Assembly: GCA_025603075.1 (NCBI GenBank)
Contig: MU626406.1
Span: 1-48,161, forward strand
DNA from: Neoconidiobolus thromboides FSU 785
Lineage: Eukaryota > Fungi > Entomophthoromycota
Direction of reading: 5' to 3'
Length of the DNA stretch: 48,161 nucleotides
Made by a program: the position numbers and the translations under genes. Each line of letters opens with the position of its first letter. Position 1 is the first letter of the stretch. The notes under the pieces were generated by a model. The model was not told the origin of the DNA. It searched no databases and saw only the letters and a program-made list of their open reading frames with translations. Of this stretch, positions 19,092 to 46,715 are shown piece by piece.

Positions 19092-19434
19092 TCTCCAAAG
19101 TTGTTGATTTTTAAAAAAAACAAAAGAGGTTGAATGTAGATTAATTAAATAAAAAAGTATCTAGCATAGTTGTATAAGCAACTTAAAAAAGTCCAAACTT
19201 TTAAACTCAATTAATTTATTAAAATCGAAATTAATCACATTATTTTGAATTTAGTATATAACTTATTAAATTATACTTTTATACTATTCCACTTGCTTTA
19301 TTGATAATACCCATTATAGTTTGAGCAAAATATTTATCAATAGCTTTAATGATAAAGTTACATTGATAAAAACTATGTATATAAACTAGGCCTTTCTTTA
19401 TATTTTTAAATATTAGTTAAATTATAAAAACATG

Positions 19435-19540
19435 ATATGGGGATGTATTTTTGTGTTTAAGAACTTTACTAACAAATTTCCCCCTCAAATAATGCTTAAA
19501 AGATAGAAAAAATAATGAAGCCGAAAAAACACCCCCATAT
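19435..19540 (+). mobile_element. MITE copy 6 (reference copy), 98-bp body 19439-19536
   Basis: ATAT|GGGGATGTATTTTT...AAAAAACACCCCC|ATAT. Confidence 0.93.
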
Positions 19541-19940
19541 ATCTAATTCTATCAGCTAATTGTTATTGTACAATATTTAACTACTTTGATTTTATAGTTG
19601 ATGCTTGTAGAGTTTTCCTGCTTATTTAATACATGAATAAATAATAGGCAATTTTTTTAAAATTTTAAATAGTAACGTTCAATAATATTGATAATAGTTT
19701 ACTTTATAGAGCATACATATTAAACCTGGATATTTTTAAATACTATCGACAACTATTTTATAGAATTTGGGGGATTGATTGTGTTATTTTAACATTAAAT
19801 TATATACTATAATTATTCAAAAAAAATTCTAAATCGAAAATTTACAAGCGTTTTATTATCAAAGGTAGCGTGAAGGCGAAGTTTTAATGGAGAGTACGAA
19901 AGTCAAAATATATAGGGCGGTACAAATAAATGATAGTTAA

Positions 19941-20047
19941 ATATGTGAGGATAATTTTTTTGGTTTTATTACTTTTTCTATCTTTCAAGCGCTATTTGAG
20001 TGGAAAGGTTGTTAGTAAAATTCTCAAAAAAAACACATCCCCCATGT
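19941..20047 (-). mobile_element. MITE copy 7 (diverged)
   Basis: ATAT|GTGAGG..TTTTTTTGGTTTTATTACTTTTTC..GCGCTATTTGAGTGGAAA..AAACACATCCCCC|ATGT. Confidence 0.85.
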
Positions 20048-20620
20048 AATAAATTTAGCCTTTTTCAAAAATTTCAATGAACAAAGGTCAGTGTGAGAAA
20101 TAACTTTTTAGAAGAAATAATACGTACCAAAGAGTAACGGAGTTCATTCATAATGAGGGTATATCAGCTTGGCTAAAGGTTAGTTAAAGCGGGAAAGAAT
20201 CTAATCTTATTTAACCTTTTATTATTTTCATCACATTCACACTCCAACTTTTTTATTTATTTGTTATAATTTGTAATTTAACAATAAAACAAAAATAAAA
20301 AAATAAGAATTAGCTTTAAAATACTACACACAGTTTATTAATAATAATATCAATATTTAAATTAACCTAATTTTATATATAGGTTTTAATTGCATACTGC
20401 TAAAGCTAAAGTTGTTCAATTTTAAGATTAAAAAGTTAGAAATTGAATTAAGGAAACATTTGAATGTAACAAATATTAACTGTGATATTTAATAGTAGTT
20501 TTAATTATCAACTTTACTTTTCATAGCATACATTAAAGAACAAAAGTAAGAGGAAGATACAGTTAAAAATAACTTATTTTTTGTTAGTATTGATTTTGGG
20601 AGTATTAAAAATAGATTTAA

Positions 20621-20726
20621 ATATGGGAATGTTTTTTTAGTTTCATTACTCTCTCTATTTTTTAGGCGCTATTTAAGCGGAAAATTTGTCAGTAAAATTC
20701 TTAAACACAAAAATACATCCCTATAT
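20621..20726 (-). mobile_element. MITE copy 8
   Basis: ATAT|GGGAATGTTTTTTTAG...AAAAATACATCCCT|ATAT. Confidence 0.92.
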
Positions 20727-21372
20727 CTTCAATCTTTAATTTTTATTTTTTAATTAAGTGTGGTAGCTAAAATGATCACGTTAGGGGACATTACATTAAT
20801 TGATTTAATTAACATAATTAACATCAAGGTACTAGATAGTTTAAACTATCTAAGTAGAAAACTCTAATATCAGAAGTAGCTAAAATATTAATATTTTCTT
20901 TCAACTACATTTATAGAATATTTACAATTTTTAACACAATTTTGTATTCATTACTTTTTAAATAATTTTGTAAGGTTTAATTGCATACTTTACAATTTTA
21001 ATTTTAATTTGAAAATTATACAAAATTCAATATTACGAATTGTATTAGCTTATAAATTCAAAACAAATGATGGTTATAACAGTTAAATATTAATTTAGTT
21101 ATTTTTATATTAAATATTTATATGTATGATTATTATTTTCGAATTGATGTATAGCTAAATATTTGTTTCGATAGTGAAGTTTAAGATGTTCTCACAAATC
21201 TTTTATTTTTCAACAAATGATATTTTATGTTTTAAAGATTTTTACGGATAAAATTTATCCTCGAAAATAACAATCAAAGAATAATGCAACAGCTTTTCTA
21301 AACTTAATAATCTGTGTTATTGCTTGAAGGAAATTTTTAATTACGAAATTAAGGCACAAATATAAAAGAGTG

Positions 21373-21432
21373 TAATTATTAATTATTAATTATTAATTAT
21401 ATTATTATATTATTATATTATTATATTATATT
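21373..21432. repeat. Compound AT simple repeat (TAATTAT)x4 followed by (ATTATTAT)x~3
   Basis: Visible tandem periodicity. Confidence 0.85.
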
Positions 21433-22196
21433 GTTATAAAATAGATGAAGTTTACTAACAGTAAGACATTAAAACGACTATAGAAATATTAAGTTGAGTG
21501 GTGTAATTAAATACATAAACATGTTTCAGTTGTTAAATTTAGAATAATAAAAACTGGTTATATTTTAAACTAACATTTTCGAGAATTATAGTCACGACTT
21601 CTATTCCCATAACAAAATATAAACATTGATGGGTGTTCTAGTAAAGTAAAATCTTTCAATTGTATTGCTCAATTATATTAAATAATTTAATTTAATTGGA
21701 TATTATATTGATTAAGTTGTAACAAGCTTTAAGTTAATCTATTAGACTGAAGAAAAAAGCCAATACATTAATAGCAAAAATATTATTTATTGATTTAATA
21801 TAATGTAGTTTGTTTGATTATTATAAATTGTTAACAGTTACGTTTTTAATGATATCTTTTATTATAATTTTGCTAAAAATAAAACTACAAATTTGTATTT
21901 TGATAAAAGAATAAGATTTCCAATATAAAAACTTCCTTATCCCCAGATATTCTTAGAACAGTATTTGATTGGTTAGATCAAAAGGTAATTCTTACCACTG
22001 TTTATCAATTTTTAAAAAAACTATTTGATAAGAATAGAAAAATCCGTTGACAATTTCCAAGTAATTTTTATTGTAGGGAAATAAGAATTATGTGATTTGG
22101 TCTAAAAATAGATTGGAACTGAAAATTGAGAGCATCTGCTCCTTAAATGTAAAGAGTGGAGCCATTTTACTCAGAACAAATAATTAAAAAAATGGG

Positions 22197-22204
22197 TATA
22201 TAAA
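22197..22204 (+). promoter_or_regulatory. Candidate TATA box (TATATAAA) ~170 bp upstream of the 22370 ORF
   Basis: GGG-TATATAAA-GG context; weak evidence in such an AT-rich genome. Confidence 0.3.
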
Positions 22205-22369
22205 GGAAAAAGGACTAATTAATTTGTTTTTGATTTTAATAGTTTAATTAAAATTATAAACGTTAACTTGATTTATTAACTACCTAATATAACACTACTA
22301 ACCCCAGCCCTAATTAATATCTATATATTTAAATACAACTACTTATCAACTAATTTTTAAATTTTAATA

Positions 22370-23449
22370 ATGTCAAAAAATGCAGATGTATTATCACTAT
22401 CAAATAACAATGGTACCGAATTAACCAGCGGATGGCGTTACTATTTACCTTCAAACCTATTTGCATTTAATAACAATAATAATAATAATGACGAACAAGA
22501 TTCTAGTGATAGTGATGATGAACCATTAGACTTATCCGATGAAGAAATTGATGCTTCTGAAGCTTACGATTTAATGTTAGGCTTACCAAAAGACCTTTCT
22601 TTATCTCCACCAGTTGCATCTCCATCTAAGCCAATAGTTGCTCCCCCAACAGCCATCAAATATGAAACTGCCAAAAAAGACTTGACCCCAGTTGCTGAAT
22701 TAACACATTCTATTACACAACTTACTCCAGTTAAAACCGTTGAGCCAATTCAAGCTACTAATCGTTGGTCATTTCCATCTTTTAAGCCTTTTGAATCTAT
22801 CTCCAAGTTAAAGACTCCACCTTTATCTCCACCACTTTTTAAACAAATTGAAAAAGAAAGTTTAGAAACTATTGAATCTTCTCTTAATACCACAAAACTC
22901 CTTGAAATAAGCTATAACAAGCTAAGAAAAGGTGCACGTAAATCTTCCCGTTTACCACTTAAAGAAACACTATTAGTTCATCTTACTGTAGATCGTATTC
23001 GAGAGTTAAGGAAAATTCCAAGACGCAGTTCCTTACGTAACAAATCAAAAATTCAAAGAACCTCTGCACCTGCTTTACCACCCAAGCCAATTCAGGTTCA
23101 AACTGTTGTATCAATTGCGAATAACCCATCAACTGCTATAAAATCACAAATTGATATATCTTCAATCTCAACACGTAATATAAAATCTATTCAATGTATC
23201 CCTCCACCAATGCTAACTCAAAAGCAAAATATGTTGAATTCGATCCTTAAACCAACTCCTGCTTACTGCAAAGATAATTCATATAAACGTAATGCAAACC
23301 TTTATATTCAATTGGACAACAGTAAAACAGAAAACTTGACCTTTAAGAATGATGTAGCAGTCATTGATACTGAGAGTGATGATAGCCCACTCTTTTATTT
23401 ATTAGCCCCGCCTATTAGCCCACCACCAAAGGCTGCTTTTGCTTATTAA
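22370..23449 (+). CDS. Intronless Pro/Ser-rich protein with a central IER/SERTA-like motif; 359 aa
   Basis: Open 359-aa frame with coding-like composition; the motif LLEISYNKLRKGARKSSRLPLKETLLVHLTVDRIRE is surrounded by low-complexity sequence. The ORF is solid, the motif assignment is inference. Confidence 0.75.
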   Translation: MSKNADVLSLSNNNGTELTSGWRYYLPSNLFAFNNNNNNNDEQDSSDSDDEPLDLSDEEIDASEAYDLMLGLPKDLSLSPPVASPSKPIVAPPTAIKYETAKKDLTPVAELTHSITQLTPVKTVEPIQATNRWSFPSFKPFESISKLKTPPLSPPLFKQIEKESLETIESSLNTTKLLEISYNKLRKGARKSSRLPLKETLLVHLTVDRIRELRKIPRRSSLRNKSKIQRTSAPALPPKPIQVQTVVSIANNPSTAIKSQIDISSISTRNIKSIQCIPPPMLTQKQNMLNSILKPTPAYCKDNSYKRNANLYIQLDNSKTENLTFKNDVAVIDTESDDSPLFYLLAPPISPPPKAAFAY

Positions 23450-24041
23450 AAGAGTACTGTATATATATTTTTACAAGTATTCTGATATTGTTTGAATAAT
23501 TTTTAAAAGTTTTAATAAAAGTACTTTTACTAAATTTAGTAATTTCATTTTTATAAGTAATTTTAATGATACATTGTTGTGATGATGAACATATTAAGTT
23601 TATGTTGTGAGAAAATAATTTTATTTTAATTGGTTTAAGTCACATTCCATCAAAATTTCTGTTTTGATTATAATCGTTACCAATTAGAGCTAAAGTATTT
23701 AATCCCTTTATAATAATTTCATTTTGCATCAGTATTAATAATGTAAAAAAAGTTAAATACTGTAGTATTATAATACTCCATGCTAATAATTGAGACAGTG
23801 TTCTTTTGTTTCATAAATGCCAATACGATTTGGTAAAAAATTAATTGAATGGAGCTAATTCTTTGTACTTTAGATGAATAGCAGCTAGTGAAGGCTATCT
23901 TTAAAAATAAGTCATTATTAAACGTAAGCTGTAAAAAAAGGGTGAAGACGATTTAATTTAAATCCCTTTTTAAAAATAAGTTAACTAGAGTTAATTTTAT
24001 ATGCATTGTCTCTTTAACATTGTTTATTTAATATACGGTAC

Positions 24042-24146
24042 ATATGGGGATGTATTTTTCATTTAAGAATTTGCTAACAATTTTTCCACTCAAATAACGC
24101 TTAAAAGATGGAAAAAGTAGTGAAATCAAAAAAAACATCCCCATAT
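24042..24146 (+). mobile_element. MITE copy 9
   Basis: ATAT|GGGGATGTATTTTT...AAAAAAAACATCCCC|ATAT. Confidence 0.93.
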
Positions 24147-24841
24147 GTTAATATACTAAAATATGCGTCATATAAGGTGATAGATAGCATATTTCAATTG
24201 AATCAAAATTTCGAAAATATAGCTAGAGACATCTATTATAGTTTATATTTTAAAACATAATATTTGTATTTAAATAGCTCAAAAATTAAAAGCATGATAT
24301 CTAAATAAACCGTAATATTTGAAAACTGATATTTTCCGCTAATTATTATATAATTGTTGTTAAATCTAGCTTCTATTATTCAATTTTTTATTTGAAAATA
24401 TTAAAATAAATATTGAAATATTTTGCGTAATAGTGGCTAGTCTATGATCAAATGAGATTGCAAATTTAGTTAAATAAGATCCATCAACTGTTTACCTTCA
24501 GTAAATTTAAAATGTTAATCTACTCAATGACTTCGTTTCTAACAGTAGAGTAAATCAAGTAATGTAACAAAAATTATGAAGTTGAAAAATTGAAATTAAA
24601 GATTGCTGTAAAGCTATATATCACCTACCTAAGTAAAAGATATAATTCAAACCATCACTTTATAATAGAATGGTATTGTATACCATTACAGAAGGCTATT
24701 AAATATTTTGTTACTTTAATAAACAAACGAAGTGGAGAAGGATAACTAGTATTTAACTAAAAACTATAAATATGCTTTGAACATTAAAACAATCATTATT
24801 AAACTAGAACTGGAATTATATTATACAAATAGTATTCTAAA

Positions 24842-25141
24842 ATGAAATTATTCATTCCTTCTTTGTTATCTGTTATCTGTTATCATTGCATCTATCAGTT
24901 TAAATCAACTTATTTCTACGTCACTTCGTTCTAATAATACTAAATTAACTTCAGTATTTAATGCCAATAATAATCTAGATGTTATAAGTATGGATCAAAA
25001 TATATGTAAATCCACTAACCTTAATAGTGAATTAGAAAGAATGGGACTAATGCTCCAGTAACCGGAGAAAAACCAAAAGCAAGGCGTGCTAATGCTCCAG
25101 AAAAACCAAGGCTAGTAAACATTGAATCAGAAAGTCTTTAA
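24842..25141 (+). pseudogene. Frameshifted secreted repeat-peptide precursor, related to the gene at the window end
   Basis: Removing one copy of the 7-nt duplication GTTATCT (24865-24884) restores a signal peptide, MKLFIPSLLSVIIASISL. Downstream, after another frameshift, TNAPVTGEKPKARRANAPEKP shares DNA (CGTGCT.ATGCTCCA, CCAGAAAAACCAA) with 48117-48161. Confidence 0.55.
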
Positions 25142-26340
25142 AGTTATTGGGACTAATCTATAAAAAATCGTATTTATTATGATAAACCATCATATTCAGA
25201 AAATGGCTTTATTTTCTTTTACTGTATACTACACTGATTCAGATTAACTTAATATTTAAATAATAATTAAATGATGTCAATGTTTAAATTTAGTGGTGTA
25301 GATCTTTTCATTCATTTTGAGCTTTTAAAGTGTATATAATATTATGTTTTTTATTTTTAATTACTACTATAATATGAAACAACAAATATATACATAAAAT
25401 TTATTTAAGTATTTAGCACAACTAGAGCTCCAATAGCTTAACAAATATAAGCTCGTCATAGATGGGATTTAAGACCTGCTTTTTAAACTCTAATTATAAT
25501 AAGATAGCTGGAATAAATAGTATTTTTCAAGTTGCTTTTGTAAAAGTTACATAATTTGCCTTAATGAATTGTATTTATAAGTATTGCTAAAATATATTTG
25601 AATAACACATCATTATAAACGACTCAAATAGACGCATATTGTTAATAAATTTGATACTTTGATTAATTTTACTAACTGTAAAAAAACAGCCAATAAGTAT
25701 AGTTAAGTGGTATACAAAAAGTTTTAATTTTAGATTTTTATACTATATAATATTTGAGTTTATTTATTAAATATGGATTGAATCATAAAGGAAAGTAAAT
25801 AAAACTAATAAAAGTATATCCATTGAAAAAAGGAATTATTTACAACCTAAAAATAATATCAAACCTAGAAGGGGTTTCGAAAAACAACTATAAAAATAAA
25901 TATAACACTTAAGTTTATAAAAGTCTTTCTTAGCTAAAAACTAGCTATATTTCCTCTGTTCAATGTAGCCTACGGTTGACTCAAGCCAATTCAATACGCC
26001 AGCCTTTTGAGCTAGGAAAATAATGTTATTATTTTATGAATTGGGATCTAAGGAAAGTAGGCTAAGTGATATATTTTCATTATTTCGACTTATATATTGG
26101 ATTAGAGTATCTAATTCTTGAAAATTATGGGACCTAAAACTTAATATATTAATTGGTTGGAAATTGACCATTAATTTTTAACAAATTGAAATTTACTTAA
26201 TAAATTATTCAAGTAAGAGCTTTATTTACAAAATCCTTAATTTTAACCAATAAGTTTCAAGGTGCACAAATTGCTTTTGTGCAAATAAAATACTGTATTT
26301 TAATGCTCCAAATATTGACTTTATCCTTTATTAATTTGAA

Positions 26341-28392
26341 ATGTATATAAGAAATTTAACTAGTATAATAAGAAACCATAGTAAATTCAATAGAGATCTG
26401 TTGAAAATGTATAGTATCACCACATTGTTTAGAAAAAATCTCAACAATCCTTTAAAAGAAATAGACTTTGATGATACTTTTAAAAACCAATATGATATAG
26501 ATTTTCTAGATAATAATGATACCTTTCTCAAAAAGTGGATTGCTTTCAATAATTTAAAACACAATGAAAAGTTAAAGTTTACTATATTTACATACAATCA
26601 CTTACTCAGAGGATTAAGTTTTGATACTGGGAAATTTAAGACAGAGGCAGAAAAATTATTTAGGCATTTGGAGGCGGGTACGCTATATGGTGTAAAAGCT
26701 GATATTAATACATATAATTTAATGTTAATGTTTTATTCTCATAATAATGATTATAATAATGTAGAAAGTATATTTAACAAGATACTGAAGAATATGCATT
26801 TAAAGCCAAATATCATCACTTTTAATAGTTTATTGAAAGCATACTCAAAAAATGAAGGCAATCTAAATAAAATGGAAAAGATTTTATATAAAGTAATGCC
26901 CAAATATGATGTCGAGCCTAGCTGTATAACATACACTATTCTATTGTCAGGGTGTTGTCAAAATAGAAATTTAGAAAAAGGCTACAAATTTCGTAATCAT
27001 ATGGGAAAATTTAATATTATACCTGATACAAAGTTTTACAATTCATTGTTGAAATTGTATTCTATTTGCAATGTAGATTATGGGACTGTATTAAATCTGT
27101 ATGAGGACTTATTAAAAGGAAACGTCAAATTAGATCGTTTTAGTTATGGGCATTTATTAGAAACTCTAACTAAGCAAGGACAAAACGAAGTAGCTGTCAA
27201 GATATTTAATGAGATGCTAAAAAGTAAAATAGAACCAAATGTTTATATAATGGAGTTATTAAAATTGAGCCCATTGGAATTATTAGATAATATGAAAGAA
27301 GCAAATATGGAGCCATCACCTAAATTTTATAATACATTGCTAAATAATACAGTAAAGAGTGGAGATTATTTACTAAGTTTCAAGATAATTAATCATATGA
27401 GGGAAAATTTATTAGAGCCTACAGTACATTCATATAATATATTAATGGATACATACCTTTCGCTAAAAAAACCAGACAAATGCCTTGAGCTTTTTGATGA
27501 GATGAAAGAAAAAGGTATTAAAGGGGATTCATATATATATAGATCAATGATAGGCGCAGCAGGATTAAAAGAGGATATAGAGTTAGCGATTAAATATTTA
27601 GATGAGGCTAAACAGGAAAACATACCTCCAAACACATTTCTATACAATTCAGTTTTAAATATTTGTGCAAGGACAAGAAACAAAAGTAAATGTAAAGAAA
27701 TGTTTAATCGGATGGAAAGCGAGGGACTAAATGGGAACATTGATAGCTATAACTATTTATTACAAACACTTAATGGGCAAAATGATTTCTCACAGGGATG
27801 GAAACTGTATAAATTAATGTTAAGCAAAAAAGTAGTACCAAATAAAGTGACATATATATATTTAAATAAACTATGTTATGATAAAATGGACGTCGCAAAA
27901 TCCTTAGAGATCTATTATGCAATGCAAGCTAGTAAAGATTGTAAGCCAGATACTATAAGTTGCGATAAATTAATGAAAGTATTACATAATATGAATCAAT
28001 CGAATAAAGCATTTGAAATATTTATCAACTTTATTTCAAATAATGAAGTATTAATATTAAACAACCAAATTATTAATACATTTTTGGTGCTGTGTTTAGA
28101 CAATAATAACTATCGTACAGCAATAGCGACATTTGATAAATTAATTCATTTGATTAAAATCAACAAAATGGGAGATCTACATTTAAATCCCTCAGTCTAT
28201 TTAAATTATCTAGAGTTATTGCTTCGAAATGAGCAAAATGAAGCATTTTACAAAGCATTAAATGATAGTACTTTATATTTTAATGTTAAATTTGTAAAAA
28301 GTGAAATTGAGTCATTATCGAAATATATTGATGATAGTGATGTTCAATTTAATAATTATTTAAGTTCATTACCATCTAACTTGGATTTATAG
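26341..28392 (+). CDS. PPR protein with many tandem motifs, probably mitochondrial; 683 aa, intronless
   Basis: Repeated 35-aa units: DINTYNLMLMFY, PNIITFNSLLKAY, PSCITYTILLSGC, PTVHSYNILMDTY, PNTFLYNSVLNIC, PNKVTYIYL. Confidence 0.95.
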   Translation: MYIRNLTSIIRNHSKFNRDLLKMYSITTLFRKNLNNPLKEIDFDDTFKNQYDIDFLDNNDTFLKKWIAFNNLKHNEKLKFTIFTYNHLLRGLSFDTGKFKTEAEKLFRHLEAGTLYGVKADINTYNLMLMFYSHNNDYNNVESIFNKILKNMHLKPNIITFNSLLKAYSKNEGNLNKMEKILYKVMPKYDVEPSCITYTILLSGCCQNRNLEKGYKFRNHMGKFNIIPDTKFYNSLLKLYSICNVDYGTVLNLYEDLLKGNVKLDRFSYGHLLETLTKQGQNEVAVKIFNEMLKSKIEPNVYIMELLKLSPLELLDNMKEANMEPSPKFYNTLLNNTVKSGDYLLSFKIINHMRENLLEPTVHSYNILMDTYLSLKKPDKCLELFDEMKEKGIKGDSYIYRSMIGAAGLKEDIELAIKYLDEAKQENIPPNTFLYNSVLNICARTRNKSKCKEMFNRMESEGLNGNIDSYNYLLQTLNGQNDFSQGWKLYKLMLSKKVVPNKVTYIYLNKLCYDKMDVAKSLEIYYAMQASKDCKPDTISCDKLMKVLHNMNQSNKAFEIFINFISNNEVLILNNQIINTFLVLCLDNNNYRTAIATFDKLIHLIKINKMGDLHLNPSVYLNYLELLLRNEQNEAFYKALNDSTLYFNVKFVKSEIESLSKYIDDSDVQFNNYLSSLPSNLDL

Positions 28393-39275: not shown

Positions 39276-42200
39276 CTAATATCTTCTTTTACCACCACGC
39301 CCATAAGGTGGTCTTTGTGGTCTTTGATTCTGATATTGTTGTCCTTGTTGATATTGTTGTCCTTGTTGGTATTGTTGGCCTTGATATTGTTGACCCTGCT
39401 GGTAGTGCTGACCCTGTTGATAATGTTGTCCTTGTTGGCCTTGAGCATAGTATTGGGTTTGAGGACGACCATAACGTTGGGCAGCATAGCCTGGATTTTG
39501 ATAACTACTTTGGGTGCTTGTTCCATAATCATTTGTTGGTTGGTTATAGCGTTGTTTCCTTATGAATTCTTCATAAGATGGCCTTTGTGCTGGATTGTAG
39601 TTATAGTTAAAATTATTTACATAACTTGCTTCTCGAGCTGCATTAGCAGCCTCATCGCTAGCGGCACTTTGGCTGTGTCCAGCATAACTTGGATATTTAT
39701 TGAATCTATTATCTTGGTGTGATGCTTGATTATTTCCATAGTTGTTGAATGAAGGAGGTGTATTATAGGACCCTGAGGCTCCTCTTGGACGATATGGTTT
39801 ATTGTCATTTCTTTGATAATCACGGGAATCTTTGGTTGAGGGATACTGACTATAGTTGGAATAGTCCTGTTTAAAATTCCTATAACCGCCGCTAACAAAC
39901 TTATAAATAAATAGTAAAATTAATTAGCAATATTATTACTCATCCTTAGAATATTCATGTCTCTGGTAATCATTTCTATTTGATCTTCCGCCATTTAAAA
40001 CGAAAGCTATTTCATTATAAGGCAATACTTTTTTAGGCAAATCAACGTTTGGTACTAAATTGCAAGGAAATACAAAACCTTCTGGAAATTCTGGCAAGGT
40101 AAATTTAAAACTACAAAAAATATTATTTTTTTATCAAGGTATTTTAAAAAACGTACCTTAAACTTTTATCACCATGAATATCAGGCTGTCCATATTTTGA
40201 GAGTGGGGATGTATAAACTGAATTAGGATTACAGTCTGGATCAATAGCCACATTTCCTGGTACTCCTTGGCTAAGTGAAGTTGGGATTTCACATTCTGAA
40301 GTATCCTTAGTATTATATATAGAATAAAGTGGTCCATAGAGTGGGTTAATATTAGACATATAAATAAGCTCGCTTCCAGTTGAATTCCTACGAATCTCGT
40401 CGGGAGAGAGTTTAGGATAAACTTTATTGATTTCTTCTAACAAACGTTCTTCATCGATAAATGGAAGAAGGGCAACAGCTGAAATTAAAAATATTTAACA
40501 ATACTGCTTAAAATAATAATGCCTTTACCTTTCCACAATTGAGTTTCTCCATTTAAATCTAAATAAAAATCTTTCGGATAAAAGTCGATGATTGGGGAAT
40601 CTTCATCTTCCATAAGAGGGTGGAATTTTTCTGGTAGGTGTTGTTTAGAATCTGCTGGAAGAACACCCATTAATTGCTCGTATGGTTTCAATGGAGTTCC
40701 TAATTCAAAATGAAATTCTGCTTCTTTTGCTGCTTCTGCTATATCTAAAGCAAATGGTGGGTAGTGATAAGGATAAAACCATTTCCAAGAAGGACATCCT
40801 TGAAAATAATATTTTAACACCCAGCACAAACCTTCAAGATAAGCTAATCCAACTTCATATTGAAATTCTGGATCTTTGCCTTTGCTACCAAATTTTTCTT
40901 CATAATACCTCTCTCTATATCCTACTTCGCCTAATCTGATATTGTCGTTTCTTCCTTTTATATAAGCAGATGACATGATAATTTCCGAGGCATCTCTAGG
41001 TTTACTTGGCGCCTCGCTAGGTTCTAGTTTGATTTGCTTCTTTGGAAGAGCAGGTGGGGGAGTAGATTCTTTAGTTTCAGCATCTTCATCTTCATTATCA
41101 CCATTAGCTTCAGCTTCATTATCGTCATCTTCTTCTCCTTCTACATCTTCTTCATTCATATTTGAATCTTTAGCATCACTGTCTGGCGAATCTCTAGCAT
41201 GTTTTTCTCCAGCCTTAACTCCAGTATCACCTGTTGTCTGCAGTTTTATAGATAGCATAGCTAATTTGTTAGTATTATTCTATAAGAAATATAACTTAAT
41301 ATTATCAAATATAAAAGAAGTGTAACTACCTGTTGTTTAGGGGGTTCTGCTTTTGTGTGAATTCTCCTAGAATGCTTCTTTTTAGCATTAGCTAATAAAG
41401 TATCTTCTAATTCAGCAATTTGACTAATGATAATCCCTGCTTTCTTTAAATCAACATCACCATTTTTAGTAATAAAGCCTCCCATCGTATTTAAGGAAGA
41501 CTTCCACATACCAACTAATTTTTCAACAGCATTCTCTCTAATGTTTAAGCATGTCAAATGTGGTAAGAAATCATTTCCAACAAAAAAGATCAAAAAGATC
41601 CAATCATCGATAGCATTTTCAAAGTCATAATCAAAAATGAGGTTTGAAATAGCTAACTCAGCAGCTAAATATTCTCTCAATAAATCCACATGTAGAAATA
41701 CAAATGGTTTCATTGGGACTCCTTTTTTATCTTTATGTACAACTGTAGGTTGATCTAAAATTTACTTTGTTCATTAATCTTCATATCATTTATATTTAAA
41801 CTTACTTCGACAATTTTTAGCATTGTGACCAGGTTTATTGCACTTAGTACAAACTTTGTTAGATCCTGAACGGAAATTGACATCTTCACGTAAAACTTTG
41901 AATCTAGGCTCATGGGTTGCTAATGAGAGCATAATCAAATCAGCATCCTAGGACTATTAATATCATAAGTAGCTATATAAATATGCTTACCAATCCATAG
42001 ATGACATGGTACATGTTTGGGTCATACCCATCAGAATTACGTGCTTTACGAATATAATCCATAATTTTATGTTCGCCTTCACCTGGTACACTAGCATCAG
42101 ATAATATAATATTGACCTATTTTAACATTAGCGTTATATTATTAATACTATTATTAATATTACATTTTTCCATAATGGGTTATCGTTCAAACTTTTGGTA

Positions 42201-45277: not shown

Positions 45278-46715
45278 ATGAATTTCCTAATTTTAAACAC
45301 TAGAAAATATTCCATAACATTTAAATATAACTTACAAAAAGCATCTAGTTATAATATAATCAAAGGAGGGAATCAACTTAATGCTAAAAGTTTGAATTTG
45401 ATAAGAAATAAAGTGAGTAAATCCAATCTTCCAAGTGAGACCTCAAGGCCAATAAAGGTTCCAGAAGATCCATATCATTTTTCAGAGTTAATTAAAGAGT
45501 TGATAAGTTCTCAAAGAACAGACGATGCGATAGTAGTATTACAAAAGAATTCTAGTAAATTTCATCAGCCTATTGTACCCTGGAATATACTGTTAAAAAA
45601 CGTATCGGATCAAGGTCGACTTAATTTAGCTATAACTTTATTTAATGAAGTAAGTTTTTTTAGATTATAATAGCTTTTGTTTTAACTGTTTTTAGCTCAA
45701 GCGTAAAGGTATAAAACCAAATAACCATACTTATTCTATTTTAATCGATGCCTGTGCTAAATCAAGTTCGCCTAATTCAAAACTTAAAGCACAGAAAATC
45801 ATTGATGAAATGAATTCAAAGTTCAGTAATAGTAACAGCGATGAGCAAGAAGGCTTTAATTTGAAAAAGTCAAATTCCAAGAAAGAGAGTTTTAACATAC
45901 AAACAATGAAAAAAGAAATCCAGTACATAGGAAAAAATAAAGGAATGTCAATAATAGAGGAGACCCCTATAATAAATGGGCCATCGTTATTCCATTATAA
46001 TAATATGTTAAAAGTTTATTCTCGTTCCAATGATTTGGTCAAAATGATTGAATTGTATGATAGTATGAGAGAGAACATCACTAGCAACAAAGGCATAAAT
46101 AATTATCAAAATAGTCCCAACTCAATCTCATGTGCACCAGATATTGTGTCGTATACCATTGTTGTAAATGCACTAGCAAGGATAAAATCAGATGATGCCT
46201 TTATTGAAACCATTAATATTTGGTTAGATTATAGAGAAGATGTTGAATTAAACATGGTCAAAAACAATGAAAATAGATCTTTTAAACAAAAAGAACATAA
46301 TAAAAATAAATTGGAAAGAAACTTGGAGTTTGATATAGGATTTTTACAAGCAATTTTATTAGCAAGTAGATATTGTAAAGATAGAGAATATTTATTTAAA
46401 GGGTTACAATTAATAGAGCAAGCGTTTGATATGAATTTAAATGTAGAATATCCAAAAACAATTAGCTTCCAAAAGTTACCAGATTTAACAGAAATTGAAA
46501 AGAATAATATCGTTCAGCCCAATCTGGCCATTATAGATTTAGCGATAACTACAGCCTCAATTTTAAAGTTACATAATGTTGTACCAAAAATATTCTTCTT
46601 TTTTATAGAAAATCATCCTAAGCAATTCAAACCTGATTTAAAATTATACGCTAATGTTTTATCTGCTCATTGCCATCAGGCAAGCGAACTTGTTAGAACA
46701 TTTAAAAACAAATAG
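45278..46715 (+). CDS. PPR protein, probably mitochondrial; at least one intron
   Basis: IVPWNILLKNVSDQGRLNLAITLFNE|LKRKGIKPNNHTYSILIDACAK, LFHYNNMLKVY, PDIVSYTIVVNALA. Confidence 0.85.

Follow-up and report, generated by a model that had tools for sequence, protein, structure and literature searches.

The gene at positions 22370–23449 of the window (the whole analysed stretch, 48,161 nucleotides of contig MU626406.1 from the fungus Neoconidiobolus thromboides FSU 785) is a genuine, expressed, intronless fungal gene. It belongs to an undescribed, expressed, order-restricted protein family with several sharply conserved short motifs, and it probably encodes a small, intrinsically disordered regulatory protein of the nucleus. 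Structure prediction depicts the 359-residue product as mostly disordered, with only three short helices, two of which form a basic helix-loop-helix (residues 166–214). We tentatively regard this hairpin as a candidate docking module for the B55 (Cdc55) subunit of PP2A, of the type found in IER and SERTA proteins, and put the likelihood of this assignment somewhat below an even chance.

Gene structure, expression and locus

The features of the gene and its product are collected in Table 1. Transcript contigs from four public runs, belonging to three studies, are restricted to 22242–23534 and contain no joints. At 23534, the contig from run X2 continues into 23 A residues that have no genomic template. 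The mRNA is therefore single-exon and polyadenylated. A sequence-only reading of this DNA had described an intronless ORF with a candidate TATA box and long flanks, and each of these descriptions is borne out: the contigs cross a 359-residue frame that opens with ATG, the TATA box is present, and neither flank of the transcript (19092–22241 and 23535–26340, ∼3 kb each) contains an ORF of at least 120 residues. The same holds when the flanks are measured from the coding sequence (19092–22369 and 23450–26340). No transcript contigs map to the 2 kb flanking the transcript on either side, and the promoter (21500–22242) contains no three-unit heat-shock element with one mismatch allowed.

Table 1. 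Positions of features of the gene, its transcript and its product, in window coordinates
Feature	Position	Strand	Basis or remark
TATA box (TATATAAA)	22197–22204	+	Read directly; ∼40 nt 5′ of the first transcript contig base
Single-exon mRNA: 5′ UTR of at least 128 nt, CDS, 3′ UTR of ∼85 nt	22242–23534	+	Transcript contigs
CDS, 359 residues plus stop codon, ATG start	22370–23449	+	ORF list
N-terminal motif S-x-W ... L-P ... F (residues 20–31)	22427–22462	+	S20, W22 and F31 invariant in the family alignment
Acidic block (residues 50–76)	22517–22597	+	Best-conserved block in the family alignment
Hairpin helix 1 (residues 166–189), contains L-L-E-I-S-Y-N-K-L	22865–22936	+	AF2 prediction for the isolated segment; S181, K184 and L185 invariant
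Basic loop (residues 190–195)	22937–22954	+	R190 and K191 kept basic; R194 invariant
Hairpin helix 2 (residues 196–214), P-L-K-E-T-L-L-V-H-L-T	22955–23011	+	P196, T200, L201, H204 and T206 invariant
Basic tract after the hairpin (residues 215–231), R-K-I-P-R-R ... K-S-K-I-Q-R	23012–23062	+	Sequence
K-P-x-P-x-x-C-[KR] motif (residues 294–301)	23249–23272	+	K294, P295 and C300 invariant in the family alignment
Pro-rich C-terminus ending [A/V]-[W/Y]-COOH	23414–23446	+	The four members end A-Y, A-W, V-W and A-W
AATAAA	23514–23519	+	Read from sequence
Poly(A) site	∼23534	+	Run X2 contig, loose end of non-templated A

The window is AT-rich (GC content 20–33%), and the intergenic flanks around the 22242–23534 transcript are unusually long for it. 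Elsewhere in the window, two pentatricopeptide-repeat proteins are encoded at 26341–28392 and 45810–46715, and a fragment of an Xrn1 helical domain lies on the minus strand at 40485–41258, where it is probably one exon of a larger gene. Within the gene itself, contigs from run X1 are apparently cut at a run of asparagines (residues 34–40, AAT/AAC repeats, 22464–22501), which may be polymorphic in length.

A second version of the gene was found in run X6, which is labelled as a different organism. This copy is ∼96% identical, with 49 differences, mostly transitions, over 1213 bases (22254–23466), and stems from a sister species or a divergent strain. In the list of 39 differences, which leaves out 11 further ones, synonymous changes affect 25 codons and non-synonymous changes 11; within residues 165–216, all ten listed changes are synonymous. 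This excess of synonymous changes, most visible in the motif region, indicates that the gene is under purifying selection.

A small family confined to one fungal order

Two short homologues of the window protein were recovered by a word-index protein search. An exhaustive HMMER search of 1.84 billion representative proteins added one further member, KAI0228529.1 from Massospora cicadina, bringing the family to four proteins in total. No bridging relatives were detected among the 1.84 billion representatives, and a profile built from the four sequences retrieved no new members when run in the word-index search. M. cicadina belongs to the Entomophthorales, the same order as N. thromboides. Since a search of this depth leaves the window protein with only three relatives, the family is apparently confined to that order; wherever the origin of a member is known, it is the Entomophthorales. 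All three genes with a readable structure (the window gene and those on contigs L001 and L002, the latter from Massospora) are intronless. The Massospora orthologue (L002, 10001–10495) is the lone called gene within 20 kb.

The acidic block and the hairpin are the two best-conserved blocks of the family alignment. The acidic block joins a P-L-D-L-S core to an acidic stretch that holds a CK2-type serine and to a short amphipathic helix (residues 62–70, A-Y-D-L-M-L-G-L), and follows the family consensus P-L-D-L-S-D-E-E-[ILV]-D ... A-x-x-L-M-L-G-[LV]-P. The P-L-D-L-S sequence (within 22523–22579, residues 52–70) is kept in three of the four members and is replaced by M-D-L-S in Massospora. It resembles the classical PxDLS motif for CtBP binding, known from adenovirus E1A. 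The S-D-E-E that follows is a putative CK2-type site, and the subsequent amphipathic A-Y-D-L-M-L-G-L helix is VP16-like. An LxxIxE motif for B56 was also sought by eye in the acidic block and does not fit.

The hairpin follows the consensus aliphatic-aliphatic-[DE]-aliphatic-S-x-x-K-L ... [RK][KR]xxR(x)P-[LI]-x-[EQ]-T-L-[LV]-[IV]-H-x-T. The IER-like motif that the sequence-only reading had singled out in this region is conserved in all three homologues, where the loop is one residue shorter. The basic tract that follows the hairpin is a possible nuclear localization signal.

Predicted structure

AF2 models the isolated segment as a helix (166–189), a loop and a second helix (196–214), with a mean pLDDT of 70.8. 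In the full-length model (mean pLDDT 48), helices are present only at 62–70, 174–183 and 197–213, and the highest pLDDT values (71–76) are found in the acidic block, not in the hairpin. A helix-loop-helix in an otherwise disordered protein, as the sequence-only reading had envisaged, is thus supported at the level of prediction.

Fold comparisons with the AF2 hairpin model did not point to a particular family. Foldseek found no match in the PDB, and VIA-align returned generic hairpins only (best Z 6.1; 4729 chains at Z≥2). A search of the ESM Atlas with the same model retrieved neither IER nor SERTA.

Similarity to IER5 and SERTA proteins

The similarity to IER5 involves a 39-residue segment (residues 175–213, nucleotides 22892–23008). 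The IER5 sequence given in the sequence-only reading proved to be exact, corresponding to residues 32–70 of PDB 8uo5_D and residues 8–46 of human IER5. The alignment is gapless at the claimed spacing, scores 34 with BLOSUM62 and contains 9/39 identities (I, S, K, L, L, L, V, L, R). When all six frames of the window are cut into 39-mers without a stop, 10,738 in number, this segment ranks best and the runner-up scores 18; the P-value in fixed-register shuffles is 1.6e-5. A P-value of this size allows dozens of equals in a proteome of ∼4 million residues, so the pairwise match taken alone lies within genome-wide chance. The homologues score 17–28 against IER5, compared to 39 for the window protein. 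These lower scores imply some selection bias, as would arise had the window protein been singled out because it resembles IER5.

Comparisons based on profiles are marginal. Neither the four proteins nor their isolated hairpins match the Pfam families IER (PF05760) or SERTA (PF06031) at E up to 10, in searches where the HMMER filters hide matches above E of ∼0.1–0.25; weak NTF2 and WSK rows obtained for one piece were dismissed as noise. Sequence searches of the PDB with family profiles, including hmmsearch with the hairpin profile, did not retrieve IER5. These searches gave just two rows, one for a dynein regulatory protein (E 0.068), the other for a designed protein (E 0.33). Scored directly against IER5, the hairpin profile reaches 2.7 bits, a value attained by 210 of 5000 shuffles (P ∼0.04). 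With hhalign, the fungal profile gives a P-value of 0.061 against IER5 alone and of 0.019 against a three-sequence IER profile, where the whole hairpin is aligned in the register of the original reading. Against a CDCA4 segment, of which the residue numbering was matched to that of Kruse et al., the P-value is 0.014 and helix 1 alone is aligned. The hhalign probabilities for these three comparisons are 1–3%. Formal support from the sequences is weak, and these statistics do not separate the IER/SERTA resemblance from chance.

The ESM Atlas gave an independent indication. Its 7.7 million clusters were queried without a hypothesis, and the scores obtained, 0.77–0.80, fall in the range that its notes call leads only. 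For residues 165–225, ranking by structure placed an IER5L cluster (PF05760) first and a SERTA cluster (PF06031) second; ranking by language-model features placed a SERTA cluster first among those with a name. When the whole protein was the query, SERTA was the annotation of the only family-bearing cluster shown (rank 4, score 0.80). Despite scores that amount to leads, IER5L and SERTA are the families that the hypothesis of a B55-binding hairpin predicts. The claimed likeness is thus upheld in part: the conserved motif, the predicted hairpin and the Atlas ranks speak for it, whereas Pfam, the profile comparisons and the fold searches with the AF2 model do not.

Correspondence with published B55-binding determinants

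The mutagenesis of IER5 by Cao et al. allows the hairpin to be compared with known binding determinants position by position. In that study, S14A, K17E and L30E abolish binding to B55; I10A, R25E, K29E, H31A, K32E, L35A and V39A weaken it; and L15R and N20A are neutral. The three essential residues are conserved in the fungal family: S14 corresponds to the invariant S181, K17 to the invariant K184, and L30 to L197 (L/I/L/L across the four members). Among the positions where substitution reduces binding, I10 corresponds to a conserved aliphatic position, L35 to L/L/V/L, and H31 to K/R/H/Q, which is mostly basic. The others are occupied differently, V39 by an invariant threonine, K29 by an invariant proline, and K32 by E/Q. 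The neutral L15 and N20 correspond to positions that vary within the family.

Cao et al. also derived a consensus for helix 1 of IER and SERTAD proteins, [I/L][aliphatic/aromatic]x(aliphatic)S(aliphatic)xK(aliphatic). The window protein agrees at 6/7 defined positions, with tyrosine in place of an aliphatic residue, and the homologues agree at 5–6/7; the serine, the lysine and the final leucine are invariant. Their helix-2 consensus, [H/K/R]xxL[L/I]x[S/N], is not fully matched: the K-E-T-L-L-V-H of the window protein agrees at 3/4 positions, the [S/N] position holds histidine throughout the family, and Massospora has glutamine at the first position. For the combined consensus, the counts are 9/11 in the window protein and 7–8/11 in the homologues, and a 9/11 match is expected by chance ∼130 times in 4 million residues.

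The rule proposed by Kruse et al. for helical B55 binders requires hydrophobic residues at i, i+4 and i+5, a lysine in the preceding helix, and a basic residue at i+2. The hydrophobic positions are represented by L197, L201 and L202, and the lysine by K184 in helix 1. In the fungal family, i+2 is occupied by E/Q/Q/Q rather than by a basic residue. An acidic i+2 is likewise present in yeast Zds1, where an arginine of the loop makes the salt bridge to D340 (Kruse et al.).

Possible function

If the hairpin (166–214) docks on the B55 (Cdc55) subunit of PP2A in the manner of the N-terminal 50 residues of IER5 (N50) and of the SERTA hairpins, the leucines at the beginning of helix 2 (L197, L201 and L202) would occupy the hydrophobic B55 pocket (patches 1 and 2). 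K184, aided by R190, K191 and R194 of the basic loop, would meet the acidic surface around the equivalent of D340, and S181 would bridge helices 1 and 2 of the hairpin. Once bound, the protein could act like IER5, which keeps substrates from reaching the phosphatase, or it could bring PP2A-B55 to the binding partner of the conserved acidic helix.

We consider it about equally likely that the hairpin is a conserved docking or dimerization module for another partner, such as a transcription or chromatin factor, with the acidic helix as an activation-type motif. The likeness to IER and SERTA would then be of the kind that any amphipathic helical hairpin carrying a basic loop can show, picked up by a reader in search of it. 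Such an explanation accommodates the marginal similarity statistics, the ease with which consensus-level matches arise by chance, the regression of the IER5 scores in the homologues, the thousands of unrelated hairpins retrieved by fold searches, and Atlas scores that count as leads only. It accounts less readily for the identity of the top Atlas families, which, among 7.7 million clusters, are exactly the two B55-binding hairpin families, or for the pattern of conservation, in which the invariant residues coincide with those that IER5 needs for binding, and variation is seen where IER5 mutations are neutral. Neither probability, that of a B55-docking hairpin or that of an unrelated docking hairpin, quite reaches one half.

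Should the hairpin bind B55, it might in addition be truly homologous to the animal IER/SERTA module, with both descending from a module in the ancestor shared by animals and fungi. This PP2A-B55 regulatory device would then have been present in that ancestor and have survived in the Entomophthorales, while being lost or having diverged beyond recognition elsewhere, including in yeasts. The gapless register common to the fungal hairpin and IER5 would fit this history, as would the similar architecture, a disordered protein with one hairpin and an acidic amphipathic helix; SERTAD proteins carry activation domains (Cao et al.). The C-termini are also alike at their very end. A vertebrate IER5 on contig L003 (26–550) ends in A-I-V-A-F-COOH, and its final V-A-F may be compared with the A-W, A-Y or V-W of the fungal proteins. 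A wider similarity of the C-terminal regions was rejected (hhalign P 0.8), with only the terminal [A/V]-aromatic pair being shared, and this lack of profile similarity counts against common descent, as do the lack of Pfam matches and the internal, rather than N-terminal, location of the hairpin. The family has four members only, all from one fungal order where their origin is known, with no intermediates among 1.84 billion representatives, and convergence is a ready alternative since helices that bind B55 have emerged separately in proteins without relation to one another, Zds1, E4ORF4 and FAM122A among them (Kruse et al.). The restriction to a single order, the lack of intermediates and the propensity of B55-binding helices to evolve independently lead us to view shared ancestry as unlikely. 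The origin before the animal-fungal split that the sequence-only reading had proposed does not follow from a family found in one fungal order without bridging relatives.

That the frame is a chance opening or non-functional remnant, and its motif without function, might be suggested by low-complexity, AT-rich sequence without a known domain, but is contradicted by a polyadenylated transcript confined to the gene, by intact, conserved orthologues in Massospora and two environmental assemblies, and by the predominance of synonymous over non-synonymous changes between strains, which leaves this explanation with hardly any probability.

Implications

Cao et al. and Kruse et al. discuss IER and SERTA proteins as regulators of PP2A-B55 in animals, and the yeast hairpin binder that they cite is Zds1. 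In a literature search, we found no paper describing a fungal relative of IER or SERTA; one mushroom study contains a gene labelled SERTAD3 by automatic annotation. If the hairpin binds B55, either this regulatory device extends beyond animals or it represents a clean convergence on the conserved B55 pocket, and it would provide a point of entry to the control of PP2A-B55 in insect-pathogenic fungi. Should the B55 idea fail, an undescribed family with sharply conserved short motifs, restricted to one order, would still remain.

Comparison with known systems

A close parallel is found in IER5, IER2 and IER5L (PF05760; PDB 8UO5 for the PP2A/B55-alpha–IER5 structure), which are disordered apart from a helix-loop-helix of ∼45 residues. 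Helix 1 with its S-x-x-K-aliphatic core and helix 2 with its L-x-x-x-L-L start show the same spacing in the fungal protein, and the basic loop and the intronless gene are further points of likeness. The fungal hairpin differs in its location, being at residues 166–214 of 359 and thus outside the first 50 residues, with the helix-1 serine of the homologues at residues 69–137. It also differs in having histidine for the consensus S/N, proline for K29, and glutamate or glutamine for K32. Beyond the hairpin and the terminal residues, no similarity to IER5 was detected. On contig L003, which carries the vertebrate IER5, the hairpin and the C-terminal part do not share one continuous frame (108–550): two overlapping ORFs both match PF05760. 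The interruption could stem from misassembly, from an internal deletion or from a variant.

The SERTA proteins (SERTAD1–4, CDCA4 and Drosophila Taranis; PF06031) share the type of hairpin and the presence of a separate acidic amphipathic helix. The CDCA4 segment of residues 37–72 resembles both the fungal aliphatic-aliphatic-acidic-aliphatic-S-x-x-K-L of helix 1 and the L-I-x-x-T of helix 2. Differences lie in the i+2 position, which is not basic in the fungal family, in the acidic helix, which is N-terminal and not C-terminal of the hairpin, and in the fungal host. Kruse et al. number the corresponding CDCA4 residues K44, L56, R58, V60 and L61, and the SERTA hairpin is considered a B55-binding relative of that of IER (Cao et al., Kruse et al.).

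No sequence relation was detected to Zds1 or to the other helical B55 binders (FAM122A, ARPP19, E4ORF4, Eya3 and p107), and there is no match to Pfam Zds_C. Yeast Zds1 is a large protein of different architecture. Zds1 shows that a fungal protein can bind B55/Cdc55 through a helix-loop-helix, and its combination of an acidic i+2 residue with a loop arginine parallels E199 and the invariant R194 of the window protein.
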